Shown piece by piece: positions 3,061-56,784 of a stretch of 64,000 nt of DNA. The notes below the pieces were generated by a model. It saw only the letters and a program-made list of their open reading frames with translations, made no database searches and was not told where the DNA came from. This DNA comes from Orbicella franksi (taxonomy: Eukaryota). The position numbers were made by a program, and so were the translations under genes. The stretch's first letter is position 1; each line of letters begins with the position of its first letter. The stretch spans positions 4,464,001 to 4,528,000 of the forward strand of contig OZ116707.1 in the NCBI GenBank assembly GCA_964199315.1, written 5' to 3'.

Positions 3061-6000
3061 TCATAAGTAGCAAACTGTGGTCAGAGAGCAAATAGAGAGA
3101 CCCATGCCATAATTTTGCTTAGTGTTTGATCAACCCAAGCTGAAAATGCTTTTGCCTGATTGCCCTGATAAGCGTCAATTCGGGCAACCAATGCTCCATT
3201 ACGACCGTAAATATGAGAGTCAATGAAAATTATACTCCCACTACCGTCCACAATGATCATCATTGTCTTTTCATTAGCTGTTAACAAATGGCATGACTCT
3301 TTCTGCTGAAGAATCAAGTCTATACCCGCATAAAACTGATATAGTAGATTTACACCAAACACATTGTACTCATGCAAAATTCCACAAATGTGGCAATGAT
3401 CACCAGCTGCATCAATGGCATCATCCACAGCAACATTAATCCCCTCACCTCCAAACAACTCATCATGGATATCATTTCCAGTCCTGATTGCTTCTGTTAC
3501 TGCCCCCTCCCATTGTTGTGTGAGGGGTTGTCCAACAGGGGGTGTAGGTAAACTGGAGTGGTAGTAAATGTGGCCAAAGAAAAGAGCAATGAAAGTGCAT
3601 GCATTGCTACCATTTCTGCCATCAATGGTTGACTGACTGACATTTCCTGGAAACAACCACTCATTGATGCCACATCCAACATTTGTTCCAGTCACAGGTG
3701 TCATCAAAGTTGTTGGGACAGGTGCTGATGAAGAGTTGGGTCCTACAGGTGATGATGTTGTGGGGGCAGGCATGGATGATGGTGCAGGTACAGATGCAGG
3801 TGCAAGTACAGGTGCAGTGGGTACTGCTGCTGTTGGTACTGGGGTAGATGCTGATGGTGGATATGAAGATAGAGCAGTTGCAGAACCAGAGGGGTATGTC
3901 TGTCTGGATGCTGAAGGAGAAGCTGATAGATTGGCATTTCCAGCTGGTGGTGCTCTTTGAAGGTTTTGGATGTCTGCAGCCATACCCTCCATTTCTCGTT
4001 TCCTCTTTTGGTGGTATGTGCTCCACCAGCTCTTAATCTGCGCTTCCTTGAGTGGCTCCAGGCCTCTCTCCCTCGTGGCTGAAATGCACTCCACAGGGTC
4101 TGCCCTTATCCCATAGTTCGCCTGCCAGTTATAAAATTCTATCATGACCTCCTGCTGAAGTGAAAACATGCGAGTGCACTAACCATGGGGTACAAAGGAA
4201 GTACAAAAATCTTGTGTGCTCTGTGCTTTTAAAATTTTGAAAGTTAGAGGGCATAACACTGTATAAAAAGAGTCAGACATTCTGGGGACATCACCTTTAT
4301 CAGTCTTTTCGGCTTCAAATGGGCCATTCTTGATGGTTTTCTTTACAGCACTAAGCACTCTAACTTACCAATGCAATGTTATTTTATACCCGACAGAATA
4401 TCAATGAGGGGAGCAGGAGTGAACACTTTTTACTTCTGCTAAGTCATGGTCAGATATTTAATCATGTTTTGCTTTCTAAAGAAAACAATTCCACATAAAC
4501 AACAACATATTGCATGTACTCCTTGTACAGTGCAATATACAAGGCTGCTTATTTGGGTGCTTACTTGAGATAGAGAAAAGGGGAGGATGGGCTTATTTCA
4601 AACATTAGCCAGTATGATAGCTGCTTATAAAGAGCTGTACTATCAAGAGTTGAAATCAAACAAATAAACATACCCCAATCAGTTCTCCCAACTGACTTCC
4701 TGTATTCAAGTTGTTACCCACTCTAACCCATCAAACAATCTTATGACTAATGTGGGCAACGTGGGTATCCAGCTTTGATTTCCCCTCACCGGCCTCAAAG
4801 TTGTTGTATTCGACAAGGGTCAACTGGAATGCTTTGCTGACTTCTGCCAAATAGAGGATAAATCCAGTATTGTGGTAGTGTGGACCATTGTCTGAAACAA
4901 CAAAAGATTTTACCATGTTATAAGGTACTCGCCCTTTATAATTTTAAAATGTTTGCTTTGCAATTTCCTGAATTTTGAGACACACGAGTGGACACTGTAT
5001 GTGAATAAGAGTACTTGACTGCAAAAAATGTTGAAAAGTACACTGAAAGATGATATTCTGTACAATAAACATTGAAAAATCATAGCTGTTGATAGCTTAA
5101 AATAATGGAAACAGGCATACAATACTTCATTAATCTAATGCCCTTTTAAAAAAATTACATGTAAATTTACCATAGGGCAAATAATTCCTAAGGAGCTTTT
5201 AGCCACTGAATTTTGGTTAACCCTTTTTAATAAGCCTAAAAGAAAAAAAACATGATAGCATTTCACCCCACAATCAATCATCAATCATGACAAAATGAAA
5301 TGACAACTAAACTGCAAGATAATTTGATACGTCACAAGTTTGCCCAAATAGAACGATACAAAAACATATGGATACTAGAAAGGAGATTTTGTCTGATAAT
5401 CCCTAGAGATATTCTATTCCAAATTGTGTGAATCCTTGAAACTATGGCTCAAAATTACTATAATAAGGAATAATTAATCAGTAATATGTTTAACAATTTA
5501 TATTAAGGCTTTTTCCATGTAATGTTCAAAGAAATACAAACTAAGCCTTTTTACACTACAGTTGTTTTCGATTTCTAACAGTATTATTATAACTAAGTTG
5601 ACTGCTTACCAGAAAATAAGTACACTCGAAAGCCAGGGAACTCCTTTTCCATCCAGTGGAAGCCAACATCCATAGCACTCTGGCTGAACCAAGCATCCTG
5701 TTTGGTGTCCTCGCTCCAGAGGTCGATTACCTCTTCTTCTCTCTGTTTCACTCACTTCGGCAATGGCAAGGAAGCCATGTAGGGAAATTCCACGCTTCCC
5801 ATACCAGTCTCTCTGGATTTCTCTTGTTCTGACACCCAACTCCAATTTCATTTTGTAATCCACGATTACCACAGCCTCGCCTGGTTGCAAGTTATCCAGA
5901 ATGTACTTATAGTAATCGCATCGGTGTCGTGTGCGTAGTAGATGTGCCACATATTGGGTATGAACCTTCATGAGTTCATCAAGTTCCTTTGTCAGGTTTT

Positions 6001-6790
6001 CTCGTTCACTGGCTCTCGGGACACTGGACAGCAGTGTGTGTAGTTGCTTGCAAACATCGTAGAGCACACATGCATCGAGGCAAAACCTGTCATGTGGCTG
6101 CGAACAAGAGGCAAATGCATTGTTCATGCAGAGTTCTAAGCATGGGGAATGCCTCTGCACTTGATGGGCAAATTGGGTCTTCATAAAGTACTGGTACTGT
6201 AAAACTTTGCCCTTAAAATCATTCACAGAAACAGTCGTTGCTCTTTCTACACAAGTAAGGAAAGACATAAACTTCTCAAAATTTGAGTAACCAAACTCAT
6301 CACATAGGTTGCACAACCCTGCCAGCATTGTGTTGTAGCGAAAGTTGGATGGAAGGTGGGTGTAAATGTAGGTGCGTTTTACACCACTGGGATATTCAAG
6401 CAAGCACTGGTTAACAAGTTCCTTAATGCTGTCCTTCCAGTACCTTACTGGTGTTTCCTGGCCGTCAATCATAACACTTTGCAGGAAGAAGGCCTTGAAA
6501 CACTTTCTCTATTGAAAAATTCAGATAGTTCCATCAGTATGTCAGGACTGACACACTGTCTCCTAAACTTGAATTTTGCTGGAGGGGTTCCACCACGACC
6601 AAACAAAATGCAGTGGACCTTAACAGTTGCTATCGTCTTTGACGAACAGTTAAACAAATCCTGCAACACACTGTATGTAATTGAAGCTACAACAATCACA
6701 GACAAATTGAGAAGTGTCGGCTTTGGAGAGAAGTATTTTACGGAGAATGCGACCACAGAAGGCGATGAAAGTTCTGATTAATGCTCGTTT
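3061..6790 (-). pseudogene. Multi-exon Sola3-like DDD/E transposase relic (copy 1)
   Basis: Motifs VIVDYKMK...REIQRDWYGKRGISLHG (exon ending 5610), GT-AG intron 5609-4892 splitting the Asp of S-D-NGPHYHN, then FEAGEGKSKLD. Frameshifts near 6470 and 5740 and in-frame stops. The family call rests on recalled Sola3-type motifs (DxxMK, FGKRG, SDN..YH, GK..D). Confidence 0.65.
3081..4154 (-). CDS. Terminal exon: homeodomain-like HTH, Pro/Ala/Ser-rich linker and papain-like cysteine protease (herpes tegument DUB/C76-like)
   Basis: Open 362-aa frame with acceptor ttcacttcag at ~4155. LKEAQIKSWWSTYHQKRKR resembles homeodomain helix 3; SQSTIDGRNGSNACTFIAL (Cys ~3598) and IIFIDSH..GRNGA (His ~3214) form a Cys/His pair. 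Probable 1-bp frameshift near 3115. Confidence 0.55.
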   Translation of the reverse strand, partial: QEVMIEFYNWQANYGIRADPVECISATRERGLEPLKEAQIKSWWSTYHQKRKREMEGMAADIQNLQRAPPAGNANLSASPSASRQTYPSGSATALSSYPPSASTPVPTAAVPTAPVLAPASVPAPSSMPAPTTSSPVGPNSSSAPVPTTLMTPVTGTNVGCGINEWLFPGNVSQSTIDGRNGSNACTFIALFFGHIYYHSSLPTPPVGQPLTQQWEGAVTEAIRTGNDIHDELFGGEGINVAVDDAIDAAGDHCHICGILHEYNVFGVNLLYQFYAGIDLILQQKESCHLLTANEKTMMIIVDGSGSIIFIDSHIYGRNGALVARIDAYQGNQAKAFSAWVDQTLSKIMAWVSLFAL

Positions 6791-37232: not shown

Positions 37233-38598
37233 ATACAAATATCTAATCAAGGAATACTGAAATATACTATTTCTGAAAATTTGAAATACTTTGACATTCC
37301 CTGTTGTTACAAGCAATGTTTTCCAGACATTTGGAAGAAAAGCAGTCAAATGCTTTGGTGTGGCGTGACATTTTTGTATAAACCAAAGATGAAACATAAT
37401 TTTATTCCTTGTTATGTTCAGAGAGTCCACTTGACAAGTGTGCAATTCAGATTGTTAAACATGGCACATGTTATCAGTTACCATAATTTTGTAGTATATC
37501 AGAACAATACATCCTCTGTGATTATATTTTCTTAGTTATTATTGCCACTGTGTAACTTGCCTGGTTCTGCACTGATTAAATAATCATAAACCCACATTTA
37601 CAAGACCCACTGCATTTCCAATGAAATGAAGAGGAACAATTTGGAAAATCATAGCAACCAAGAACACAGTCATGTTCACTATAATTGGTACTTGTTCAAA
37701 ATAATTGGGACTAATTGGTGTTAGTGGTCATTGCTTGTTATCGCATATTAGAGCCAATCAGGATCTTCCATTTTTATGGCCCACGGAGTCAATAATGTTA
37801 TCTGCTAACAAAGCAGTTATAACCAAGGAGTGGTTTGTTATTCCCAGGCAGTGAGGTCTGGGTTTAAATTTCAGCTCTGTTTTTTTTTCCTCGTTCAGTC
37901 ACAAATCACCGTCTGGTCTCTAAAGCGCATGCATCACCTGTGCATGTGTACAGCAAATGGAATTTACAGAAGTTGTCGTCGTGAAAGGTTAGCATGGATT
38001 CCATGATTTCTGGGGCGATGAAATCATATACAAATGAGCACACCTTTCAAGGTAGACCAACACTAAAGGACATTAAGCGTTTTCGGAACGGGGTGGTCTG
38101 CAAGCCTTACAAGAGATCAATTTTACGACCAAACATTTTGAGTGAATTTATCAAGAATCATGTTATACCAAAGGAGCCATCAACTGGGGCTATCAGCTCT
38201 TCAACTTGATAAAAAGCATCTTCAGAAGCGTCATCGTAGGATCGTGAACCAAGTAGAATCCCAGTATGAACTCAAGAATGTCTGAGCAACAAGAGCAGAA
38301 AGGTTAGAAAATTTGTTTACGAATGTATCTGTTTGAGTACACCTAAGTAAAATGCTCCGAGGAACTTCATTAAGTATAATAAAGATAAAATCTTGAACTA
38401 AACGATATTTTCTCGTTATTTTCTTGTAACAGAGTTGTGTCTTTACAAGAGTGAAACCCATGGAGCGAATTACTGTACATTTAAGCTGAAAGAAACTAAT
38501 GTACATGTATGTTGACCCCAGCAAAACAATTTGCCAGGTATTACAGTTCAAACATTAGGTTTTAGCGGCTCTGAGGTGAATGTATAATCCCACTAGTT

Positions 38599-41031
38599 GA
38601 AGAAGCTAGTCATAAAAGGGGATAAGTGACGATTTTGGTTGCTTTTCTTTTTTCTTGCTCCAAATTAGCTGAATTTTTGCATGTGGTCTTCAATGTAATA
38701 GAAAAACGTGTTCCTGTATTTTTGCCGCTGGTTTTTGCTTCGCTTTATAAAGACGCCGCTAGGAAAACCGAGTGTTTTTTTGCATACGCAATATCCTGAA
38801 AACGAAGCAAGGTTTAGCGCAAAAACTACGGGACATTGCTAAACATACCTAAACAAAACTCTATGCAAAATTTGGAGCGTTTTCGACAAAGTTCACTTTT
38901 GATTAAAATACCTAACGCCCTTTTCCCGCCGAGGCTGCAAATAAACGAAGCCGGGCCTTTGTTATGATAAACAGAGCCGATCCTTTGTTATAATAACCAA
39001 GCCAAGCCTTTGTTATAAGTCGAAGTCTTGCCTCGGTTTATCATAACAAAGGATCGGCCCGCCGTGACCGCAGGGACTTTGATCTCACTTAGAAAGCAGC
39101 AAAATGTCAATTTCACGCAACGTATAAGCTCAAAAATGTTGATTTCACGTTAACGCGTGACGGCAAGGATGTTGGTTTCACTTAGAAACCAGCAAAATGT
39201 CAATTTTACGCAGCGCATAAGCTCAATGATGTTGATTTCAGGTCTAAGTAGGTTGAAATGTTGATTTCACGTTAACGCGTGACAGCAAGGAGGTTGATTT
39301 CTCTTAGAAACCAGCAAAATGTCAATTCCACGCAACGTACAAGCTCAAAAATGTTGATTTCAGGTCAAAAAAGGTTTAAATGTTGATTTCACGTTAACGC
39401 GTGACGGCAAGGATGTTGGTTTCACTTAGAAACCAGCAAAATGTCAATTTCACGCAGCGCATAAGCTTAATGATGTTGATTTCAGGTCTAAATAGGTTAA
39501 AATGTTGATTTCACGTTAACGCGTGACGGCAAGGATGTTGGTTTCACTTAGAGACCAGCAAAATGTCAATTTCACGCAGCGCATAAGCTCAATGATGTTG
39601 ATTTCAGGTCTAAATAGGTTAAAATGTTGATTTCGCGTTAACGCGTGACGGCAAGGATGTTGGTTTCACTTAGAAAACAGCAAAATGGTAGGAGCCCATG
39701 ATGGGCTCCTGAAAATGGTAATTTCACGTAACGTATAAGCTCAAAAATGCTGATTTCAGGTCAAAAAAAGGTGTAAATAAAAATAAAATGAAACAAATAA
39801 ACATTTCAATAAACACTTTTTCAAATACGGCAACGTCTTCAATGGCTAAAAAATCACGAGATAAAATATAGTTTTCGACAAACGCGATCGTAGCTTTATG
39901 TCACGCACCGCCATAACTTCCAAGTTCAAAATGCGCTGGTACCTCTTATGCCTGATGAGGACAACAACTTTGGCGGCTGTTTAGTTTTGGATTTAAGAAT
40001 TTGATGACTCCACGTGAAAACGCTCTATAAATAGGGCTGACAGATTAACAGATTAACCCTTCTGCACAACGTACGGGTCTCCATACATCTGCATGTCCCC
40101 TGATCCCAGAAGCTCAAAACACTACAAATCATGCCGATTTGAAATAAAATCAACGCAAACTGGATCACAGATCTGTTACAATCGATCGCCACTTGCTGGC
40201 CATTATTATGTTTAAATCTAGTTACCAGTTCGAGAAACGTCCGCAGAACGTAATCGCAATGCATGCCGGGAAGGGTCTTTACACCTTGTGCGCGGGAAGA
40301 CATGGCGGTCGATACAAGACAAATTTTATAAGTCTAAAACCAGTTCTCGCTTTCCAAACTTTGACGCTAGCAACGCTTGGCAAATGGGCCACAACTCGCC
40401 AGAGGGTATTTTTCTTGGACAAGAACTGCTCTTGGACTTTGCTACCTGGCTCGATCTGACTTCGAACGCCGATAACACGATTACGGTATATCAGCTGCCT
40501 TCGAAGTTTCAGAACACATTTTGATTCTTTAAAACGTGCTGATGACTTACGGGTTTATCGAGGCTTTATGATGCCTCTCAACCACCAGGTAGGCACACAA
40601 GGTACTTTAAAACAATGCTTAAGATATTAGTTGACAGAGCTCTAATACGGCACATCTCTTTTTTGTTTGATGGCATTTCGTTTGACGCTCGATCGATTCA
40701 CGTGTTGTGTTCACGTCACAATAACCGGTGTAAACAATCCGTTCCCAGATTTCCGCTCTATATGCTGTGGGATTTGGTTTTGACTTCATACACTATAAAC
40801 AGTCTGCCTGTTTGCTGTTCAACAAATAAACTCCTAAAGACATGGCTAGGAAAAGCCAAGTTTTTTGCCTACGTTTTAACTCGAAAACAAAGCAAAAACC
40901 AGCGACAAAAATACAGAACCACATTTTTCTATTACATTGAAGACCACATGCAAAAATTCAGCTAATTTGGAGCAAGAAAAAAGAAAAGCAACCAAAATCG
41001 TCACTTATCCCCTTTTATGACTAGCTTCTTC
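38599..41031. mobile_element. Non-autonomous TIR DNA transposon, GAAG element copy 1 (2433 bp)
   Basis: ~148-bp TIRs starting GAAGAAGCTAGTCATAAAAGGGGATAAG; TSD AGTT (38595-38598, 41032-41035); about 99% identical to 52649-55338 outside the array; no credible ORF. Confidence 0.92.
39085..39770. repeat. 122-bp higher-order tandem array (5 full units) inside GAAG element copy 1
   Basis: CGTTAACGCGTGAC recurs every 122 bp; each unit has four ATGT(T/C)(G/A)(A/G)TTTCA cores spaced 33/28/32/29 bp. Confidence 0.95.
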
Positions 41032-42111
41032 AGTTGTTAACTTGGGTCTGGAACTTTTTGTTAAATCTTTTCAACTTATTCCATTTTGTGCCAAAATATG
41101 ATCGTTTGCCACAAAGTCCGTGCTTGCCCTCGAAGAAAGAGACATGCTTTTACTATTGAAAAAGTTGTTTTTAAATGTGCTTAACTGTAAATAGTCAAAA
41201 CATTAGGTTTTAGCGGCTCTTAAGTGAAGGTATGATCCCGATGGTTGTTAACTAGAGTCTGGAACTTTCCTTAAGCTAAAATCATTTTAAACTTATTCCG
41301 TTTTGCACCAAATGCGCGCACGATCGTCTGTCGCAATGTCTGTGCTTTTTCCCTCAAATAGACATGGAAATGCTTTTGCTATTGAAAAAGTCTTTTTTAA
41401 ATCTGTCTTGTCTGTTCTGTTCTGAATTCATTGATTAGGAGAAATGCATGTCAATTGAACTTTTTATTAAACTCACCTCTGTTGTTTCGTGTGAAACTCA
41501 AAGAAAGATGAAGTCTCCTCAATATCGATTTTCGCCTTTCAATGTCTCCACTCGGTGTTAAGTTCTCTACCTCTTCGCACATTATTATATAGTATTTTTA
41601 TACTTACATTTGTTGACAATTGATAGGCGACCAGTCATAGACCTGCATGAGTTTGCATGCTGAACACACAAAGTGAATGCAAAGCCTAATTGTTCATACC
41701 GAAAACAGTCCTATGGGTGGTAGGGTGGGTGCGAGAAAAGGCAGTTTAGGGTCGGGTGTACGGCGTGTCTTAAAGAGTATTTTATTTAAAAGTCAACTGA
41801 AATGTGATAAAATAACTTTATTTCACACTCTTGATTTGAAGCTGTAAATTAAATACTTTAAATTTAAACTTGTGAGTGGTACTGAAAAATTGTACGTGAA
41901 GCATATGGGCACAATGTCAGTTGTGCATGACCCTTGGTTGTTCTATTTATGACCTGACAGCGATAAATGAATCAGAGGTGAGCCCCGAGCCCATCAGGTA
42001 GGAATTTGACCCAAGGTCAACAACAATGACATGTTGCAGGTTTTGCTTTCAACTGCATTGTTGTCAAGATGTATACTTAAAATTGACTTGTTCGATGGAA
42101 ACTGTTTTCTT

Positions 42112-45100
42112 TTAGAAATACTTGAATGAAAAAGCTTGAAACCTGTCTTTGATTAACTTAATATTTTTGACGTTGAATGTTATAGCGCCTTCATCAGCTT
42201 GCGTGACTTCGACATTGCAGTGGAAGATGAAAATGGCCTTAATGTCTTGTTTATCAGGGACTCATGGCCAGATGAGAGCACCTTGTTCATTCTCTGACAG
42301 AAAGTTGATCTGAACCTTATTAGCCAGAATTTTTTCTACTTTTCCAATGTAGAGACCTTCTTTGTAGGCAATGGCAACCCACTTGTTCAATGTTAGTTTC
42401 TTCAGGTCATAATCCTACAGAACAAAACAAAAAATGAGTTAATTTTTTCTGCCGATTTCTAGTTTTGATACCGTCTCAAAAATTCTGACGACCATAAAAC
42501 TGACATTTGAAGTTTAGGTTGTTCATGCCGATGTATGTGTCTTTTGAGATTATCACAGGTTGAAGTAATTTACCTTGTTTTTTAAATCTCTCGCTTCCAT
42601 TCTAATCATTTCGGCCTTTGTTAACAACTCACATTCTGACTCAGAGGTAAAACCCTTTGAAATACAAAACATATAGAGGCCAGTTAAAATCATTTGTTCA
42701 CTAATAGCTTATAATTTATTGTACTGAAGCTGTCCTCATGAAATGAGATGGTGAAATTTTGTTGCTCAAGAATCTAGAAGGGAACACTTGCACTATATAG
42801 TTATAATTCAATTCAATTCAGTTCAATTCCTTTTTCTATAATATACTGGTTATTTACATACAATTATAAGGTAAAGTACTGAAAATAATAAAAAATTAAG
42901 AAATGTGAGATTTTCAGTCTTTTTACAATTCATAACTACTGTGCTGGTTTGCACAAGGTGGCTGATCTAACTCGGTTGAACTACTGTTTCTTTTACTTTG
43001 CACTTTATAGGTAATGTAGATAATACTCTTCTGAAGTAATTGTGAGCAGTACTTTAATACCTGTGGTGAATTCACTCAATTTACTTGATTCACTTGATTC
43101 CTCTATCCTTTCTATATGGTTAGCCTGCCAAATTAAGAAGGCATTTGATTATATAGGGCAGACTATGCCTAAACGCTCCTGAAACTGGAAAAGAGCTGAC
43201 AGAGAAGGTCACGCAAAGTTTGCTAGAACTACTGTGCTGCTATTTATAATAATTTAACTGTAAGAATCTTAGCTACTTCTATACCTTCCAAAGCATTGAC
43301 AAGGGCTTGTCAGCTTCACTATCACCATCGCTGTTGTATTCTAAAAGATTTAGGTCAAATACATCATTCACCTCACAAAGGTAGGCCAAAACAGCAGTGT
43401 TGTGATAATGAGGGCCATTGTCTGTAGATAGAAGAGCACATGTAAGAGAAACATGAAGATGACAGCATAGTAATATTCATATTATCTTGAACAAGTGACC
43501 TCTAGAAAAGTTTCATACTATTATAAATAGGTACAACAATAACTTGCATTTTGGAAGTGTGTGAACTCAATCATGATAACACCCAGGGAATTAACCCCCC
43601 TTGGCAAATGATCACCCCTTTTCCCCCTCTCCATGTAGTGCCTTTGCTTCAACTAAATGTATACTAGCAGAAAAAAAAGGCATCCTGTTTGGTGTCTTCT
43701 GACCACACGTCAAAAACTTCACTGCTCTTCTCATTGTCCGAGACTTTGGCAATCATGTAACATCCACGCAAATAAAAATACCTCTCTTCCCATACCAGTC
43801 CCTCTGGATTTCTTTGCTTCGCTTTCCTAGTTCAAGTTTCATTTTGTAGGCAATTATCATGACACACTCTCCAGGCCTCAATTCTTCACAACAAACTTTT
43901 AGTAGTCACCCTGATGTTTTGTTGGTAGCAAATGTGACAAATAGTCTTGATGTATTCCATACAGTTCTGTTAACCTTGGCTTCAGCTCTGTTTTGCTAAC
44001 ATCTGGAAGCATTTCAATCTCTTTTAATAGAGAGCTGTACATAGCACAGAAGGGTGGAACATCTGCACACATTGCTCTGTGGTCTTCTGTGCAGGCATTA
44101 AATGCATATAACATGCACAGTTCAAGGCGGTGACTGTTTTTGTGCCAATTTCGAAAACTTGGTTTTCAAAAATGTCTGATAAGCACGCACATCTTTTATC
44201 ATGGATGATACGTTCAGATCCGGACACATTGAAGATATCTCTTCAATAAGTGGACACAGTTCATCAAAATTACTGTGGCCAAAGTCGTCGCAAAGGTCAC
44301 ACAAACCTGCCAGCATCATGTCCATATGGAAATTGGTGGGCAAGTGGATGTAAATATATGTTCTTTTGACTCCATTGGAGAATTCCAGCAGGTACTGATC
44401 CACAAGTCCCTTGATCATATCTTGCCAGTACCTGACTGCTGTCTCCTCACCTTCAACCATAACACTACAGTATGATGATGCCCGTGAAACATCATCTCGA
44501 TAGAGAAATCCGCTTAATTCTCCAAGTACTTGCGCACTGACACATTCGCAGGTGAACTTGTACTTGTCTGATGAAACACTTCCACGACCAAAAAGTATGC
44601 AATGTACCTTTGTTGCTGTTATGGTTTTTGAGGAACACTGGAAATATCACTGCAAAGTGGAATAGGAAAAGTCCTTGGCAACAGTTGACAGAAGCCATCT
44701 TTTCTCATCAGGATAGCTTTGAATCCTGCCTAGATCTTGTGCTGCCTCAACACAGGACTTGAAGATGTCTGAGGTAATGCCACTGAAGGAGATTTTACTG
44801 CCTTTCAAACTGCCCCCAATCAGTACTCTTTGCATCTGTTTAGCAGAATTCAAACAAATAGCTTTGTTTTCAGTTCTGTCTTTGCAACTGTGATAATCAG
44901 CTGCAAGTTTACGCAGGAATAATCGTCAGTGTCAGGCTTTGTCTGGCAAATTTCACCAAATGTTCCCTTCACTTTCCACTGAGGACCAAATCACTGATAA
45001 AGTGAGGAATGTTCTCACCCTTGAAGTGAACAAATTTATTAGCAGAATCTGCCAGAAGGTCAATCGTTTTAGCCCTCAGTACTTGTTGTGTTCTTTTTTC

Positions 45101-45800
45101 AGCATTCTTGTAAGGCCTCAGCAGTAGATCTGGAACCTGGACTTGCTTTGATTCTGAAGGCACCAAACAAGAACTTGGATCGTTAATGTTGTCCTCAAAT
45201 GGTGGAATGTCAACGCTGAAATTGTTGAATTATTTTCCAGGGCTGAATCGTTGAGGCAAACAGTTAGACTGGCTCTTTCTTCCTAAACAGAAACAACAAA
45301 GAGAAAATTAATTTCTCACTATTTCATTTATTGCAGACTGCTAAGCTCGGGGCTGATGACACTGTAATGTACACTAAAAAACTACTTCAAACTATTTCAT
45401 CTTCATCGTTCAGTAATGTACAATGATTCGCTTACCTCTAACTTCCTACACTTTTTTCCAGCACAGATTTTCCTCTTCCTATTTGTTTTTTAGAAGAGTT
45501 GTAGTCGCAGAAGTGAACTTCATCTGGAGCCACAACACGCAAACTGTCTGAAGAAATCTCTCTGTGATGCCATGTGCCATATTTCAGACACGCACATTTA
45601 CCCACAAACAGCATTCGCACGAAAGCCAGGAGACGAAATGAAACATGGAATGAAAACTATATACACTATTTGTACTATATACAATATCTACACTATTTAC
45701 AATATTGACAAGCGAGATTTTTTGAGAGAGAGCCATGGATATCATCAAAGATGGCTGTCTAGTTGAACTGACTTCGGTAACTTCTGAAAACCTAACTTCC
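42112..45800 (-). pseudogene. Multi-exon Sola3-like transposase relic (copy 2, diverged family member)
   Basis: Homologous to 5606-6760 (CSSKTITATKVHCILFGRG, VRYWQD, GVKRTYIY.HLP.NF, LAGLCDLCDDFGHSNF, REIQRDWYG). Same phase-1 intron before DNGPHYHN (acceptor 43422-43423). Downstream exons 42654-42574 and 42414-42112 encode a Tudor-like barrel (KWVAIAYKEGLYIGKV...INFL...IWP). The 5' boundary is approximate. Confidence 0.65.
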
Positions 45801-46012
45801 GCACATTCCAAACCTCTGAAACTTCACCAACTTGTAGAACAATAGATTCTATACCATAAAAGGAAGATACTTCAGCTAAAATTGACTGTCTTTATTAGAA
45901 CATCGGAGAAATAAAGCTTTTAGCCAATCAGAGAAGCGGCAATTAATTAATAAATTCACTTGAAGCGGGGCACTACTGCTCATGCGTTGCGCACCACCTC
46001 TTTCCCTCTTAA

Positions 46013-46200
46013 GCAATGTATTACTTAAAGAGTTTGCCATGCATTGTTTTCCTCAGTTTTCACAAAAAAGAAGAGAGACTGTGAGTAAGGAGCACAAATA
46101 GTTTTACTGGCATCAAAGTCAAACACAACTGGGCCTGGGTTTGTCTCAACGTCATTGGCTAGTTGCATTAATTCAGGGTAGCTGATATAGAAGCAATACA
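46013..46200 (-). pseudogene. 2A-like peptide (DVETNPGP) followed by the start of a C76/herpes-DUB-like protease
   Basis: LMQLANDVETNPGP at 46153-46130, then KTICAPYSQ...GKQCMANSL (one frameshift, one stop). Confidence 0.7.
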
Positions 46201-47414
46201 AAAATATCTGTGTAAGCCAGAGACAATTCATTTTGGTTGGTTTGGAATAACAAATCACACATTTCAGTACTGGTAAGTAAATCGCTGCGGAGTAAAATAA
46301 AAGTAGCATAGAACACCAGAATTTTTCCTTGAAGCATCCTTGATACTCCCTGAGAGCTAAATATACGCAATGCATGCCAACAACAAGTCTGTGTTGTTGT
46401 AAACTGTTCTCCATTTCAGCTTTGTTTTGCCCAAATCAACTTCAGATTTAGGTGGTCAAGACTAATTCCACGTTCCAGTAAACAATTCTCAGGGAAATGA
46501 TCAAGGTATTTCTCAATGTATTAGCTCAAATTATACTTGGTTTGCTCAGGTTTGCTCAAGAATGCGTCAAAGTTATCTCAGTCACACAATCGTGCAATCA
46601 CTAAGAGATACAGGCTTGCGATCGAAGTCAGCTATTCACCTGAGTATGGATTCCCCCTCTCATGCAATGTGTTTATACATGTAAACAAATTAAAACAAAG
46701 AAGAAATACTGACCTTTTGTTCCTTGAAAACCTACTTCGCACACACTTAACAACCAACTAAGAAACAACTTTGCTGTAAACAGCTGCGCCACATTCTTAG
46801 GGGGCGACTATTGAACTTTCAGGGGCTGACGAGGGGAGAGTGGGTTATTCAAGCTGGGCCTGAAATTTATTTAGTTTTGGACCAGAACAATCAAGATATA
46901 TCTTTCTCAATCCTGTACGATTGTCTTCTTTAGTTACATTACTATGCAATGTTTTTCCTCTAAGGGGAAGCTTGGATCACTTTTCTCATCACAATTACCT
47001 CACCCCACCCCCCCCCCCTCAACAGAACACTTTGCACAGCTTGAACAACCATCCAACCCCCTGTCCAGCCGTGCAGCCTGCCTGATTGAGTACCACCTCG
47101 CTTCTCGGTTACATTGGCTGGACATTAGTATGTCCTCCCAAAAAGCATTAAAAGCTCTTATAGTAAAGTTCTTTTATTATTTTCTCATCAATTTGACTGA
47201 AAATGTCTAAATAAGCTCTTGTTGGAAAACAGAGGTAGAGCAATGGGGGCAGCCATTCACCTTCTCTACCTATTCTCATTTCTACCTAAAAGTAATTAAA
47301 CAATTAAGACCACTACATGAAAAAATAGGTACGCAGTGTGTACATGGTCGGACATGCAATACATGCATATTATCTTATTAACAGTAATAAGTTTTCTAGT
47401 TATCCTTCACCATT

Positions 47415-47664
47415 TTATTTGAAACATGAACAATGCATATATAGATATGGAACCAACAAAAACTTTTGCTGAGTGCACTTTGACAGCGAGCTGTGTAAAG
47501 AATCTCCTTTGCGTAAGATTTGAGCCATAGCAGCAGCACTGGAAATCAGTCCGTGGTGTTGATAAATTAGAGAGTTTGCCATGCAGTCTTCCCTGTGAGT
47601 AAGGAGCAGAAACAGTTTAACTGACATCAAAGTCAGTCACAATTGGGGCTGGGTTTGTCTCAAT
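47415..47664 (-). pseudogene. Second, degenerate 2A plus C76-like protease fragment
   Basis: IETNPAP (Gly to Ala), TVSAPYSQG, CMANSLIYQHHGLISSAAAMAQILRKGDSLHSSLS; nucleotide similarity to 46030-46153. Confidence 0.6.
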
Positions 47665-48510
47665 TCAGTCAACACTAAATAAATCAATATGAAGTAAAAC
47701 AAAAGCACAATAGCACACCGTAATTTTTCCATTGTCACAAATTATGTAGAGTATTGTCATTTGTTGCTTTTGTTGTAATTTATGTGATTTAGTTTTGTTT
47801 TGATTATAAGCAATGTGATATGAGAAAGTGTTAAGTGACAGACAATGCAAGGGAATCTGATAGCCTTGACTTTGGAACCTTATAATTGAAACCCAAACCA
47901 AATGATTGACAGTGATAGGAGAGACAATAGAACACGAGAATAAATGAAAAGGGACTTTTGTAATCTTGAGCTTGAGAGAGATCTTTTCCAGTGATCAATA
48001 AAGTAGAAATCAGGATTTCGTGTTAGTGTGTTGGTGGTTCAATCTTGCAGGCAATTTCCAACACAAGTGGCACCTCCGACGGGACACATATACTGGGATT
48101 AGACTCGATCAAGAGCAAAGCAAGGATCATTGCAAAGTGATAAAGGAATTGTCCAAGATTTTACTGAGCTGAAGATTGCCATTTTGTTGGTTTATCTCAT
48201 GACGTCAATTGAGTTAACCCACTTCATAACCCATTTCAGTGCGGCCGCTCATAAAATATAACAAATGTTTTAAAAAATGTTTCAGCTGTTGTCACTGCAA
48301 AGGAATTCATATGTGAAAGAATCAACATTGAGTCAACAAACAAATTTTGAAATAATGGAATGGTGAGTACAAAAGGGGAAGTAAGGCTTATTTTATTAAT
48401 GACGATTGTGTACATGTCAGTCAGGCAGTGAAAAATTTTTCTTGACTTAAAATAGACTAGTTAAAAACTATAGTGAAGCAAAAGAAAAAAATTATTTGCC
48501 CTATGCAGAT

Positions 48511-48660
48511 TTGGATGAAATACATTTAGCGAATGGCTGGCAGGCAAAAGAAAACTGCCCAGATTTGAAGCCAGTAGATGCGAGTACATTTGCTCGTGTG
48601 ATTGAAAAGGTCTTGCCAAATGTCACAGAAACCAAACGAAGAACTGAAGGAGGGATCCCC
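48511..48660 (+). pseudogene. Exon fragment resembling an RFX-type winged-helix domain
   Basis: Acceptor gccctatgcag, then LDEIHLANGWQAKENCPDLKPVDASTFARVIEKVLPNVTETKRRTEGG (RFX-like P.DA..F.RVI..V.P...R). Confidence 0.4.
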
Positions 48661-50529
48661 TTGTCTGCGATTCTTGTCCACCTGGCAGAAGTTTTCCCTC
48701 TTGGTCCTTGTTCACTCTTAACTACAGTCACCCCGAATGGTTAAAATCAAGTGCCAGTGCAAATGGAGTGGAATTCATCACAGTTGCTCCTTTACTCACT
48801 GCTTTACTATGTAATGATGGTCAACTGAAGTAAAACCAAAACCAAAAACAAAGTCATTGCCTGATTGTTGGGGAGGGGAGACCAAACCCTAAATCCCAAA
48901 GTATGACTTACGTCATACCATGAGGTAAAGATGGCTTTCCAGGCCCAGACTTTCAGGAAACAGGCCCCAGACTCTGGCCCCTTGTACTGCTCTACTTGTA
49001 GCTTCCTCAAGATAATTTTTGGTAAAGAACACAAACCTCTGATTTTCCTTTCTGAATGGCGATTTTTGATACCCCATCAAAGTACAGTCAACGGAAGTCA
49101 ACACTCCAGAACTAAAACCTGTTCCCTATCGGGCCACGTGCCCCCGAGGAGCCCTTAAAGGGGTACCCCCAGGCGTTGGGCTCGCTCACTTGAGATGGCT
49201 GACTGTACAAGCATGTGAAAAGAAGCTTTATTTTTCTGGGAAGATAGATTGCATGGTAAATCCAAAGAACATGTTACATGTTAAATTTTGCCATAAACCT
49301 ATGCATGGATGTAGGTTACCTATGGAAAACGTATCCTACCACCAATACTTGAAGACATGAATCTCACTCAGAACCTGAGCCCGGGAACCCAAGCCGGAAC
49401 CCGAGAAACCAAGCCTTTGGTGGAAACATTTACTTTGACATATTGGAAATGAGGTTAAACATAAATATTTGGCAACTTTGATAAGTAGTGAGCAACCACA
49501 CAGAAAATTTACAAAACAGAAATTAAGATGCACGCTTACCATGGGTTAACTTCAAAAGACTTTGAAAGGATCTTAACCCTAACCCTAAAAAAAGTCTCAC
49601 TGGCGGACATGGAGTATTTTCAAAAACCTGTCCGGCTGCCAGAAATGTAGCCACAGTGGTCTATCTTGTACTATACTTAATCTAAACGGCTACATCACTT
49701 ATTTTTGGACACTTTTTGTCTGAAATTAAAATCGTCTGAAACTTTATGCAAGTAATGTCTACTAATTTGAAATTTGTGATTTATTTGCAATCAAACATAC
49801 AATAATTTTCTTTTTACTTTGTGTTACAGTCTTCTTACAGTGTGTTAAGCTCTCTTTCTAGAACCCTTGAAGCCAATGAACTGAAACATGTTTGTACTAC
49901 TACCTGATTCTTAACATAATGTTTAACAGCTGGCAATTCCCTATGCTTTACATTTTTTCTCAAACGTCTTGCATCCTTTCTCTATTTTTTTTTATTTTTT
50001 ATTTTTTATTTTTTATTTTTTTTTGACACTTGAATTGTGATTCACGCTACTTACAAACAACATAATCTGTTCACAGGCTTCCTCTTTGAGTGATGTTTCA
50101 CACAAAATGGAAAATGAATTGTTCCCTCGAGTTTGTTGTTTGTAAAGCCCTTTAAATATCTTTTTGCCTCTTGTTTAATAAGTGTGATATCTTCCCACAG
50201 GTTGCTGCACAAAATAGACCAAATAGCTCACTCTGTGTAGCTGTCGCACGTTTATTCAGTTGTGTAAACCGATAATTTAAAAACATAGGTTTCTTCTTCC
50301 ATTGTTTTTCCTCAGTTCTTGGTAGAAATCTGTACTCTTCCTGTGAACAGACGAAAGTTATATGAAGCCAAATATTAGCAACTGTTAGTTAGAGATACGC
50401 TTAAGCACAAACAAGATCTTGAGTGGGGACATACCTGCAAAGACCGTAGCGAGGTCAGCCATGTTTGGTATCAAAGTGAAGCTCTCACCTTCTAGAATGT
50501 AAAATTAGTGCCAAATCAACGATCAATCA

Positions 50530-51441
50530 AACTATATCGTCGTTAGGCTTTGTATAAAACGGCCGATCTCGACAACGCACAGAAAATATTATTTGAGCCC
50601 AGTCTCCCAACTTCACGGCTTTGCAATGTTGCACACAGCGAACCCGGTAGTTTTGATGGCACGTGTGCCCAGCGTGGTCATCGTAATGATAAAGACATAA
50701 CAGGTTTTTCCTAAAAGTAGAGCAGTGTTCAAACAGAGTTCCAGTATTCCAGAACTTAAAAGAGGAAAAGGCATGACCTCTGAAGTTGTGGTCATGTGAT
50801 GCATCACGTAAAGTTGCTCGCGCACTACAAACTTTTTCTATCACACTAGCTTTTTTTTCGCTTCATCTATAGGTTATGTTCAAGTCATCAAGGACTTCTT
50901 TCAATAGACAAAAAGTCATTATCTTCCGGCAGCCCCATTTTTTTCCTTTCAGCCTCTTGCTTTTTTAGTGTCTCTTCCTTTCAAAGTTGTTCTTCTGCAG
51001 CTTTTCTAGCTGGGATAACAACACTTTGAGAGCTTCTGTATTTACTTCTAAAGGACAATTCCTTCTTTCCAGAGGACCATTAAATGTTGGTAAGTGTGTA
51101 TAGCACTTGCTCCACATTACTTCAGTAGTTTCCACTAATAGCCACTTTCCATTGCCCTTTTTGTTGTGTGAGAGAACTTTGAAACACACCAAAACTTTGT
51201 CTCTTACATTGTTGTCTTTCTTCCATTCGAATACTGGCACTGCAGACTTCACAGATGTCTTATGCAGCAAGCGTAAGACCTGGCTGCACTTTGCACCAAT
51301 CCCTGGTACCAAGAAAGCTGAAATGTCATTTGAATAAAGTCCATTTGTAGTCTTTTTTGGATTAACAATTGCTTCAATTCTCTCATAAAAATCATTAAAT
51401 GCCATCCACTTGGCCATTCTTGAAGTGGAGGGGTTGTACAC
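50530..51441 (-). pseudogene. Unassigned frameshifted coding relic (~300 codons)
   Basis: A 158-aa open frame continues after frameshifts into MGLPEDNDFLSIEEVLDDLNITYR.SEKKASVIEKV (SAP/HeH-like helix pair) and a Cys/His-rich stretch. Confidence 0.3.
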
Positions 51442-51509
51442 TTTATCTCATTGCAACAATAAGAAATTGGTAATGTGGTAGAATTTCCCCTTGTATTCAA
51501 CATAGTTCG

Positions 51510-51700
51510 GGGAGAGGGCCCGGGTGGGGGTACTCCCTTATATGGGCTATATAGGTATGTGCTGCGGGGTAGGGTATGGTTTTTTGAGGTTCTCGATCCT
51601 TAAATAGGGTATCGTTTTCACCCATGTTGGCGTAGTGTCCCGGTGTGATCCTTAGATAGGGTGCCTAAATTGTATCAGCTAAAATAGCAGTGCATAAACA
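51510..51700. repeat. Dispersed repeat fragment
   Basis: cccgggtgggggtactcccttatatgggctatataggtatgtgc...gggtatggtttt, a terminal motif I recognise as a common cnidarian non-autonomous DNA element; family not assigned. Confidence 0.4.
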
Positions 51701-52648
51701 CCCAGTTAAGCGGAAAACAAATGATCTGTTAAAGTTCATTTATATAAAGATTGTGTTTTTCCGTGGCAGTTAGTCGTTGTTTGGATCGTCACGCAACGTT
51801 TCTCTCCCCTCCCCCATTAGTCTGCGAACACTGACAGTTTTCTGGCTTTTGTTCTACGCCAGTTCTTTCCGGCAGCGTGGAACAAAAGCTGGAAACTGTA
51901 TGTGTTCGCACGCCACTCCATTAAATATGGCTTTGTGGTTAAATAATAAACTCTGTAATAAACAGACCTACACATACTTGATGCGAATTTTTATATTCTT
52001 TTCTTGTTGTCACACCCGGCTGCCACATTTTCAATATCCAATAACACACAAAATAAACTTAAAATGTCATCTAGTCAAACTGCTGTCCAGGGTTGCTGTC
52101 TTGAGTTGTACTATTCAGCGGTGGTCGGGGGAATTATGTCACAGGAGAAACCACAGTCACGAACGATCCAAACTAAAGCTTTGGCCTTTGCCTTTTCCGT
52201 ATTAATCCTGACTGTAAGTGGGATCTTTATGCCTCCTCCTATGCACCATCTTCCTTTTGGGTCACTGCATGGGCTTCCAGTTACAGCGCCGTAAGGTAAG
52301 TGTTTCACATTAATTATATTGTAGTTCTTTATGTCACTGAAGCGAACTATGTATAAACAGGATATTTTCCTGGACATTTCTTGATCGAGGTACTTACCAC
52401 TGAAGTCTTTCGAATGACCACAACGGGTGGACAAGCTCACGCTCCAGATGACCTAGTTGTCCACGATAATTCGAAATCTTAAGAGTGATTTTCTGAGTGT
52501 CGAGAATCAGAAGACGGTCACGAAAAATTGATTTTTCTTTTATTTTGCCAAAACATACCTTTGGGTGAACTTATTTATGGAAAAGTAGTTTAAACTTCCA
52601 ACGATTCATTTTAGGGCCAAAATTTAAGAAAGTTCGAAATTTGCATAT

Positions 52649-55338
52649 GAAGAAGCTAGTCATAAAAGGGGATAAGTGACGATTTTGGTTGCTTTTCTTT
52701 TTTCTTGCTCCAAATTAGCTGAATTTTTGCATGTGGTCTTCAATGTAATAGAAAAACGTGTTCCTGTATTTTTGCTGCTGGTTTTTGCTTCGCTTTATAA
52801 AGACGCCGCTAGGAAAACCGAGTGTTTTTTTGCATACGCAATATCCTGAAAACGAAGCAAGGTTTAGTGCAAAAACTACGGGACATTGCTAAACATACCT
52901 AAACAAAACTCTATGCGAAATTTGGAGCGTTTTCGACAAAGTTCACTTTTGATTAAAATACCTAACGCCCTTTTCCCGCCGAGGCTGCAAATAAATGAAG
53001 CCGGGCCTTTGTTATGATAAACAGAGCCGATCCTTTGTTATAATAACCAAGCCAAGCCTTTGTTATAAGTCGAAGTCTCGCCTCGGTTTATCATAACAAA
53101 GGATCGGCCCGCCGCGACCGCAGGGACTTTGATCTCACTTAGAAAGCAGCAAAATGTATAAGCTCAAAAATGTTGATTTTAGGTCAAAAAAGGTTTAAAT
53201 GTTGATTTCACGTTAACGCGTGACGGCAAGGATGTTGGTTTCACTTAGAAACCAGCAAAATGTCAATTTTACGCAGCGCATAAGCTCAATGATGTTGATT
53301 TCAGGTCTAAGTAGGTTGAAATGTTGATTTCACGTTAACGCGTGACGGCAAGGAGGTTGATTTCTCTTAGAAACCAGCAAAATGTCAATTCCACGCAACG
53401 TATAAGCTCAAAAATGTTGATTTCAGGTCAAAAAAGGTTGAAATGTTGATTTCACGTTAACGCGTGACGGCAAGGAGGTTGATTTCTCTTAGAAACCAGC
53501 AAAATGTCAATTCCACGCAACGTACAAGCTCAAAAATGTTGATTTCAGGTCAAAAAAGGTTTAAATGTTGATTTCACGTTAACGCGTGACGGCAAGGATG
53601 TTGGTTTCACTTAGAAACCAGCAAAATGTCAATTTTACTTAGCGCATAAGCTCAAAGATGTTGATTTCAGGTCTAAATAGGTTAAAATGTTGATTTCACG
53701 TTAACGCGTGACGGCAAGGATGTTGGTTTCACTTAGAGACCAGCAAAATGTCAATTTCACGCAGCGCATAAGCTCAATGATGTTGATTTCAGGTCTAAAT
53801 AGGTTAAAATGTTGATTTCACGTTAACGCGTGACGGCAAGGATGTTGGTTTCACTTAGAGACCAGCAAAATGTCAATTTCACGCAGCGCATAAGCTCAAT
53901 GATGTTGATTTCAGGTCTAAATAGGTTAAAATGTTGATTTCGCGTTAACGCGTGACGGCAAGGATGTTGGTTTCACTTAGAAAACAGCAAAATGGTAGGA
54001 GCCCATGATGGGCTCCTGAAAATGGTAATTTCACGCAACGTATAAGCTCAAAAATGCTGATTTCAGGTCAAAAAAAGGTGTAAATAAAAATAAAATGAAA
54101 CAAATAAACATTTCAATAAACACTTTTTCAAATACGGCAACGTCTTCAATGGCTAAAAAATCACGAGATAAAATATAGTTTTCGACAAACGCGATCGTAG
54201 CTTTATGTCACGCACCGCCATAACTTCCAAGTTCAAAATGCGCTGGTACCTCTTATGCCTGATGAGGACAACAACTTTGGCGGCTGTTTAGTTTTGGATT
54301 TAAGAATTTGATGACTCCACGTGAAAACGCTCTATAAATAGGGCTGACAGATTAACAGATTAACCCTTCTGCGCAACGTACGGGTCTCCATACATCTGCA
54401 TGTCCCCCGATCCCAGAAGCTCAAAACACTACAAATCATGCCGATTTGAAATAAAATCAACGCAAACTGGATCACAGATCTGTTACAATCGATCGCCACT
54501 TGCTGGCCATTATTATGTTTAAATCTAGTTACCAGTTCGAGAAACGTCCGCAGAACGTAATCGCAATGCATGCCGGGAAGGGTCTTTACACCTCGTGCGC
54601 GGGAAGACATGGCGGTCGATACAAGACAAATTTTATAAGTCTAAAACCAGTTCTCGCTTTCCAAACTTTGACGCTAGCAATGCTTGGCAAATGGGCCACA
54701 ACTCGCCAGAGGGTATTTTTCTTGGGCAAGAACTGCTCTTGGACTTTGCTACCTGGCTCGATCTGACTTCGAACGCCGATAACACGATTACGGTATATCA
54801 GCTGCCTTCGAAGTTTCAGAACACATTTTGATTCTTTAAAACGTGCTGATGACTTACGGGTTTATCGAGGCTTTATGATGCCTCTCAACCACCAGGTAGG
54901 CACACAAGGTACTTTAAAACAATGCTTAAGATATTAGTTGACAGAGCTCTAATACGGCACATCTCTTTTTTGTTTGATGGCATTTCGTTTGACGCTCGAT
55001 CGATTCACGTGTTGTGTTCACGTCACAATAACCGGTGTAAACAATCCGTTCCCAGATTTCCGCTCTATATGCTGTGGGATTTGGTTTTGACTTCATACAC
55101 TATAAACAGTCTGCCTGTTTGCTGTTCAACAAATAAACTCCTAAAGACATGGCTAGGAAAAGCCAAGTTTTTTGCCTACGTTTTAACTCGAAAACAAAGC
55201 AAAAACCAGCGACAAAAATACAGAACCACATTTTTCTATTACATTGAAGACCACATGCAAAAATTCAGCTAATTTGGAGCAAGAAAAAAGAAAAGCAACC
55301 AAAATCGTCACTTATCCCCTTTTATGACTAGCTTCTTC
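52649..55338. mobile_element. GAAG element copy 2 (2690 bp), nested in the Sola3 MITE TIR
   Basis: Same TIRs as copy 1; TSD ATAT (52645-52648, 55339-55342); same orientation as copy 1. Confidence 0.92.
53135..54077. repeat. 122-bp higher-order tandem array (7 full units) inside GAAG element copy 2
   Basis: CGTTAACGCGTGAC at about 53211, 53333, 53455, 53577, 53699, 53821 and 53943. Confidence 0.95.
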
Positions 55339-56784
55339 ATATAATGGCGGTTTTTGTGGCTTAAAGTGTTCACAATTTCGCGCTTCTTTACGAAAACAGC
55401 AGGGGCGTAAAAACAATCCTATGAAAACAAAACTCTGCAAAAATATTATGTCACCCATACTTTAAAATCGTGTAATGAGTTTCTTGAAGTTTTGTTCGTA
55501 GATTTTTAACGAAGGGTATTTGTACAGCCGCCATTCATGTCTCTTGGCAAGGAACAAGTAAAGGCCAACTTTGACTAGTATAGATGCCCTCTGGTATATA
55601 TCATTTGGTCAAAATATCTACATTTTAGGACGCCTTGGTTATTGTTTTTTTTCACCCAAAAAGTTATAGCTCTGGGAATTAAAATGTTCTCCATCAGTAA
55701 AATAATTTAAGCAAGTTCAATTTTACTCAAATCACAAGGTTATTCTTTGGAAGTTAACAGTTTAAGAAAGGAAACAACGACTCACCGTTACGTTACTTCT
55801 GCTGCTATAAAAATGATTTTAACTACCCAGTGTCCTTGTGAGCTGTTCTGTAAAATATTTTCAGTAAAACAGCGAACATAAACGACCATAAAATTCAACA
55901 AGGTCGACATTGTTTATATTTGAGATGAGACACTGAGTGGCATACACAGTCCTGGCCGTTTTCATCGTCTTGCTCAGTCGAGAGTGCTATAAAAATATGA
56001 TAAAATATACGCTTCAAACAAAACTTGAAGAAACATATTACACGATCTCAAAGTATAAGAATGAAATAATACTTTTGCCAAGTTTTGTTTTCCATTATAT
56101 GCAAATTTCAAACTTTCTTAAATTTTTGCCGTAAAATAAATTGTTGGAACTTTAAACTACTTTTCCACGAATAACTTCACCCAAAGGTATGTTTTGGCAA
56201 AATAAAAGAAAAATTAATTTTTTTGCGACTGTCTTCTGATTCGCGACACTCTCAGAAAATCACTCTTAAATGCCCTCCCCTTCAAGCGGTACTCCTGCAT
56301 AGCCACAAATCGCTCTCCAATTTCGACTTGAAAAGTGCACTCATGGTAGTCTTTAGCCACACAGTAAATTTCAACTGTGCTGAAAACATTATTTGGACTA
56401 TTTGGGACAGATAAAGACTCCAAAATCATTCATAGACTGTGACACTCAACACAACCAGAATTTTAAACCGCATATTATATTGAAAGTGTCATCTGTTGAA
56501 TAAAGGGAGCCCCGTGAAGTGCCAGAACTGACACTTAAATAAATTAAAGCTACTAATAATCGTATTTCAGTGCCTCGTGCAATTATCATTTGAGGTATGC
56601 CGAACAAATTTGTAGCTAAAGAATAAAAATACATGCCATTGCCTTGTCTCCCTCAGCCTTTGTCTGAATTATTTCAAACAACCTGTAGGTTTGCCTGAAA
56701 GACATTAGCTTCGTTTCGCTCATTTAGGACACAAACTCAGCGACAAAAGATGTAATAAATATGTGGTTTACAGGTCTCTATACT

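Follow-up and report, generated by a model that had tools for sequence, protein, structure and literature searches.

We analyzed a 64,000-nt window of the stony coral Orbicella franksi (contig OZ116707.1 of a 497-Mb assembly; positions are those of the window unless a C-numbered contig is given), which carries two copies of a non-coding transposable element, here called the GAAG element. Copy 1 (38599-41031, + strand, 2433 bp), which is 99.5% identical to the family consensus, is flanked by the target-site duplication (TSD) AGTT, at 38595-38598 on the left and again at 41032-41035 on the right. Its left terminal inverted repeat (TIR; 38599-38746, + strand) is 148 nt long, starts with GAAGAAGCTAGTCATAAAAGGGGATAAGTGACG and is 96% complementary to the right TIR on the minus strand (40884-41031). 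Copy 2 (52649-55338, + strand, 2690 bp) is bounded by TIRs at 52649-52796 and 55191-55338, and lies between ATAT duplications at 52645-52648 and 55339-55342. In both copies the TIRs measure 148-149 nt with 95-96% complementarity, the termini start with GAAGAAGC, and the element is opened by GAAGAAGCTAGTC and closed by its reverse complement; the window contains the 21-nt terminus four times, where 0 occurrences would be expected by chance. Outside a tandem array of 122-bp units the two copies are ~99.6% identical (99.6% over the right 1245 nt compared), and the number of array units, 4.5 in copy 1 and 6.9 in copy 2, explains their difference in length. No open reading frame (ORF) of the element exceeds 116 aa. 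These measurements agree with the first-pass annotation of the sequence, which had described twin, near-identical, non-coding copies 14 kb apart, with ~148-bp TIRs and the TSDs AGTT and ATAT.

Homology between copy 1 and copy 2 ends exactly at the termini, beyond which the flanking sequences are unrelated. Copy 1 lies in one half of a tandem duplication, since its flank (38545-38598 plus 41036-41160, ~210 bp) is ~80% identical to an uninterrupted paralogue of the target downstream (41193-41390, + strand), which aligns unbroken across the insertion point when copy 1 is taken out together with one AGTT. Copy 2 lies within another TIR element (52483-56265), which has inverted repeats of ~170 bp with the termini GAGTGATTTTCTGAG and is bounded by TTAA at 52479-52482 and 56266-56269; this host is a non-autonomous element of the piggyBac type. 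We placed contigs from two other public coral samples on positions 38000-41600. Contigs of the samples X1 (organism A, 1221 nt) and X13 (organism D, 556 nt) were found to join position 38594 to 41032, skipping 2437 nt, which correspond to copy 1 plus one TSD. The copy 1 site thus has an empty allele, and because it is bridged in two other coral samples, the insertion is recent or polymorphic. The 4-bp TSD is thus backed independently by the paralogous target and by the empty-site contigs.

We then counted the family in the genome by its terminus. The first 33 nt gave 337 matches genome-wide at ≤2 mismatches, corresponding to roughly 150 elements; multimers, described below, hold 54 of the 337 termini, and ~140 dispersed elements remain. 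The 31 copies sampled are 97-99.8% identical to their consensus and the elements range from 2340 to 5830 bp, mostly according to the number of 122-bp units. Longer copies (3-6 kb) were considered as autonomous forms and rejected, as they hold extra 122-bp units or nested inserts and no transposase. All 22 stand-alone copies checked are flanked by a perfect 4-bp TSD (ATAT in nine, AATT in four, ATTT in three, AGTT and AAGT in two each, ACTT and AACT in one each), and 16 of the 22 have the form AWWT. Perfect 4-bp TSDs were also found on three multimers and on a related 17.9-kb element, and in all 26 cases the first position is A and the fourth is T, while TTAA is absent among them. The element resembles a miniature inverted-repeat transposable element (MITE) in being non-coding and in its copy number, TIRs and TSD, but its size of 2.3-5.8 kb lies outside the strict MITE range (<~800 bp), and the correct label is non-autonomous element rather than MITE in the strict sense. 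The GAAG element is a real, young and probably still mobile family. Indeed, the recent activity that had been claimed for it as a non-autonomous TIR family is borne out by its ~150 copies, their 97-99.8% identity to the consensus and the empty-site allele, and no copy without a consistent ANNT duplication was met among the 22 tabulated.

In a survey of paired termini, the only long element sharing the GAAG termini was a 17.9-kb element at C3:14160647-14178507, which lacks the GAAG interior. Its first 43 nt are identical to those of the GAAG element, with 82-86% identity over ~190 nt; its TIRs extend to ~1.1 kb and it is flanked by the TSD ATTT. The minus strand of this element contains four transposase exons, which align to residues 235-757 of a 779-aa paralogue. 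The paralogue is an intact, intronless ORF of the Sola1 type (DUF7869) at C4:24204957-24207296, ~50% identical to the transposase of the 17.9-kb element, and a 99%-identical protein (P0001) is present in the public protein collection. The exons also align to relatives in other cnidarians and in insects, whose database names are uninformative. Pfam recognized DUF7869 alone in the exons and in the paralogue, and found no domain, including BEN, in the other ORFs of the 17.9-kb element; our literature search returned no mention of DUF7869. The autonomous-type TIR variant occurs 13 times in the genome, including five solo ends and three pairs 0.6-0.9 kb apart (C6:2467105-2467667, C6:25554364-25555156 and C14:3155254-3156054), and these short pairs have the look of genuine MITE-sized forms derived from the 17.9-kb Sola1 element.

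The type of this transposase was assessed against published motifs. In the supplementary alignment of Majorek et al. (2014), the Sola1 rows (E.10) read FDLQQCLPTP, FYKRQLWTYN, GYCYMWDE..KRG, SDNCGGQNRN and FLERGHT, the Sola2 rows (E.12) DFAENYT and DGCAGQYKN, and the Sola3 rows (E.13) DYCQKV and SDNASSYHGN. The core motifs of the 17.9-kb element are DMITFDFQKNLETP, FGIHDC..QGYLYLWDE, SYSDGCGGQNKN and LERGHTYLENDRDF, and the coral proteins (the C3 exons and the 779-aa paralogue) read DMITFDLQQNLPTP, FYLRQLWTYNFGIHDC, GYMFMWHE, SDSCGGQNKN and LERGHTYLENDRDF. The transposase of the 17.9-kb element thus shows the Sola1 core pattern FDxQ.NL.TP, SDxCGGQNKN and ERGHT, and both coral proteins match the E.10 rows Sola1-1_AP and A. 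pisum at the motif level. The group motifs of Sola2 and Sola3 are not matched by the partner, which has FDFQKNLETP and SDGCGGQNKN, and Pfam detected in the exons or the paralogue neither an integrase (rve) nor an Academ-type domain, unlike what would be expected of Ginger1/2 or Academ. Judged by these motifs, the partner transposase is of the Sola1 type. As the target AWWT/AWDT is a hallmark of Sola1 (PMC3845634), the partner motifs together with the 4-bp AWWT-type target assign the GAAG element, on sequence grounds, to a new non-autonomous family of the known Sola1 group and not to an unclassified class. The pointer to Sola that the first-pass annotation had drawn from the A..T preference of the 4-bp target was therefore sound (ANNT in 22 of 22, AWWT in 16 of 22), whereas its suggestion of a possibly unclassified family fails, the long element with the same termini having a Sola1-motif transposase and an AWWT/ANNT target. 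For the same reason the GAAG terminus is no bar to this assignment and is merely this family's version of a Sola1 end. A link to ISAzo13/Zator, hinted at by a protein atlas, was tried and rejected: the Pfam family PF07592 did not match the protein, and the TSD is 4 bp and not 3.

Very probably, each window copy goes back to a separate, recent cut-and-paste event of a non-autonomous DNA transposon that belongs to the Sola1 group of the Sola superfamily, with the 17.9-kb element or a close relative as the likely source. Of an autonomous Sola1 element with long TIRs, the GAAG element would retain just the outermost ~150-190 bases, the remainder, with its iterons, satellite-like 122-bp array and unique sequence, being unrelated filler. 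In this model, a DDD transposase of the Sola1 type, acting in trans, would bind the ~40 nt of terminus common to both elements, excise the GAAG element and insert it at A-N-N-T, with ATAT preferred, where a 4-bp staggered cut would duplicate those bases. The most likely source of this enzyme would be the single 17.9-kb element at C3 or a close relative, whose transposase would then be intact and the mover of the GAAG element, by cut-and-paste excision; the shared termini (43 nt identical, 82-86% over ~190 nt) suggest this mobilization. Several observations weigh against this picture. The two TIRs of the 17.9-kb element are just 80% alike, the assembly holds no second copy of its transposase, and the gene structure, in its N-terminus and splicing, is predicted only. 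A protein search with the last exon gave exon-sized relatives only, at ≤90% identity, and no spliced product. For X21, a raw polyA RNA run without a positive control, the count was 0 reads, which is no evidence on either side. Furthermore, the Sola1 assignment derives from motif comparison with a published alignment and a DUF family of Pfam, and not from Repbase/Dfam or phylogeny. Beyond the first 43 nt, the TIR identity to the GAAG element falls to ~82%, and therefore a different transposase source, unassembled or lost, is possible.

The interior of the GAAG element was described in the first-pass annotation as an unusually elaborate cis architecture. The motif GCTAGGAAAA...TACG indeed lies in + orientation just inside both TIRs. 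At the left end, it is contained in a segment on the minus strand (38733-38873) that derives from the ancestral long TIR by inversion: read in reverse, its 40-nt core is 87.5% identical to the TIR of the 17.9-kb element, and element positions 135-275 match positions 172-315 of that long TIR in reverse, at 67-68% over ~145 nt, while the motif at the right end keeps the ancestral orientation. By this alignment, the shared orientation reflects a ~140-bp inversion within an ancestral longer TIR, and the visible TIR would therefore have been shortened to 148 nt. The observation of the repeated motif accordingly stands, but not its reading as a cis module. A cluster of iterons follows (38940-39055, + strand), with three direct copies of CCTTTGTTAT in a 26-bp period and one inverted copy. 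The 122-bp tandem array (39063-39687, + strand) holds ~4.5 units in copy 1, each with four motifs of the type ATGT(T/C)(G/A)(A/G)TTTCA, and 6.9 units in copy 2 (53158-53994). Its last unit in copy 1 contains a 10+10-nt palindrome of 21 nt (39690-39710), AGGAGCCCAT-G-ATGGGCTCCT, with the 8-bp direct repeat AAAATGGT on either side (39682-39717 as a whole; 53996-54031 in copy 2). The AAAATGGT-bracketed palindrome is fixed across the whole family and looks like the remnant or footprint of an insertion with an 8-bp TSD in one array unit. The region from 39800 to 40883 (+ strand) is unique and non-coding, with CACGTG at 40011-40016 and TATAAATA at 40026-40033; it returned 2077 first-look candidates genome-wide, the best at 99%. 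The iteron cluster, array, hairpin, CACGTG and TATAAATA are thus all present as sequence, as is the unique region, although this measures ~1.1 kb instead of the ~0.8 kb first given. A search of Rfam with the GAAG element yielded no significant family and one sub-threshold, miRNA-like match on the iteron hairpin. Nothing comparable to the iterons, the array motifs, the hairpin or the unique region is present in the 17.9-kb relative. The claim of an elaborate cis architecture is not upheld in view of this absence, and the iterons, array, hairpin and unique region look like unrelated filler, of the sort that many non-autonomous elements contain. Because the family is so young, the conservation of these modules says little.

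The family also occurs as multimers. A 61-kb array at C5:3797052-3858164 holds 22 whole GAAG elements head to tail, mostly with a 2733-bp period, and dimers were found on C2 (C2:14704577-14709347), C1 (at 33.32 Mb), C12 (at 6.072 Mb) and C14 (at 10.709 Mb). Between one monomer and the next there are always 1-3 copies of a near-perfect foldback unit of 91 bp, H, which also occurs apart from the GAAG element; the junction reads GCTTCTTC-A-(G/A)TGCTCCC...GGGAGCA(C/T)-T-GAAGAAGC. A single TSD encloses each multimer whose outer flanks were read, namely ATAT for the C5 array, ACAT for the C2 dimer and ATGT for a dimer on C3 that has lost part of its sequence; no TSD accompanies the inner monomers, whose flanks are reverse-complementary and not duplicated. 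Models of sequential insertion were ruled out, since the inner flanks are reverse-complementary rather than direct repeats. Within the spacers, the junctions between H units are ACTGT or ACAGT, which equals ACT fused to AGT with one base lost, and look like excision footprints of a monomer lost between two H units whose ends were rejoined. In the simplest reading, the composite arose once, transposed by its outer ends and was expanded by unequal exchange. We consider it possible, though doubtful, that the family also moves and amplifies as multimers, a whole multimer being carried within a single TSD and one having grown to the 61-kb array. If the outermost ends are used, and if H arises as a by-product of Sola1 ends or is the partner that they prefer, the passage from a eukaryotic cut-and-paste transposon to a young satellite array could be seen with its excision scars.

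A sister subfamily, G*, was found at C2:15972000-15979000, C1:28510900-28511700 and C2:4133300-4134100. Its interior is 88-92% identical to that of the GAAG element, while the terminal 71 nt differ, with the termini GAAGGGGTGAGTGC. Two blocks, GAAG and TAAGTGACGATTT, are nevertheless retained in the G* termini and make good candidates for the sequences that the transposase recognizes. G* forms a tandem array of its own, with a 2650-bp period, linked by direct repeats of half of the foldback unit (half-H).

Three other explanations were weighed against this reading. The two window copies lie 14 kb apart in like orientation and are ~99.6% identical, as a local segmental duplication in place of two transpositions would leave them; yet the homology stops at the termini, the flanks and the TSDs (AGTT and ATAT) differ, copy 2 sits within a TTAA-flanked TIR element and copy 1 within an unrelated tandem duplication, an empty-site allele is known for copy 1, and ~140 other dispersed copies are equally similar, so that we give such a duplication hardly any weight. 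It is also very improbable, though somewhat less so, that the element belongs to another superfamily with TSDs of ~4 bp (Sola2, Sola3, Ginger1/2 or Academ) or to none yet classified, sharing its termini with Sola1 by coincidence or capture. A Sola3-like ORF does lie in the window at 5606-6472, and the GAAG element was set against published Sola motifs and not against Repbase/Dfam. However, when this ORF was considered as the partner, BLASTP showed no similarity to the partner transposase family, and no GAAG termini lie nearby; the sole long element with GAAG termini bears Sola1 and not Sola2 or Sola3 motifs, Pfam found no rve or other additional domain in it, and the AWWT target is the Sola1 hallmark.

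The third explanation concerns the interior and not the origin of the element. The iterons, the ATGTTGATTTCAC-like array motifs and the subterminal motif might be functional cis elements, such as extra binding sites for the transposase or host factors, or a promoter, which would explain the success of the family better than a passive deletion derivative. The modules are kept in all copies, G* shares the whole interior in spite of its different terminal 71 nt, and the case echoes the Acropora CMITEs, in which the internal region is more conserved than the TIRs. Against this, the copies are too young for conservation to inform, the modules are absent from the autonomous relative, the number of array units varies freely in elements of 2.3-5.8 kb, and Rfam gave no family match. 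The RNA data add little on this point, as the polyA run had 0 reads with no positive control, and the 'RNA' contigs of sample X15, which cover the GAAG element plus flank, may be DNA carry-over. A cis function of these modules, in any of the roles named, therefore seems unlikely, and we retain the reading of the GAAG element as a non-autonomous Sola1 derivative whose interior is largely filler.

To our knowledge, what is known of Sola elements comes almost entirely from their sequences, and we know of no Sola transposase shown to be active in an assay. The ~150 near-identical copies, the empty-site allele and the candidate autonomous partner together provide a concrete, testable pair of transposase and donor. 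The copies may also serve as insertion-polymorphism markers for coral population genetics, and the multimers with the 61-kb array offer a traceable case of a DNA transposon seeding tandem repeats. In genome annotation, such copies should be entered as non-autonomous Sola1 elements and not as an unclassified class.

Among known systems, the GAAG family resembles the Sola1 transposons in its 4-bp AWWT-type TSD, its TIRs and a partner with the Sola1 core motifs in a DDD-type triad context. The coral termini start with GAAGAAGC, whereas those of the insect Sola1 MITEs start with GGACCG (PMC3845634), and the coral autonomous relative differs in its very large size (17.9 kb), its ~1.1-kb TIRs and its intron-split gene. 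The Sola1_NA MITEs of Bombyx mori and Rhodnius prolixus are likewise non-autonomous, share only their termini with autonomous Sola1, use an AWWT/AWDT target and are present in tens to hundreds of copies, but measure 0.2-0.7 kb, as compared with 2.3-5.8 kb for the coral element with its expandable 122-bp array and multimers (PMC3845634). The CMITEs of Acropora (Wang et al. 2010, PMC2872659) are also non-autonomous coral elements. Complete CMITEs follow one another in tandem, separated by spacers that are nearly identical, which provides a precedent for the arrays, and the CMITE interior is conserved between subfamilies, as it is between GAAG and G*. In contrast to the GAAG family, with its ANNT targets, Sola1 partner and foldback linker, the CMITEs are related to piggyBac and insert at TTAA (PMC2872659).

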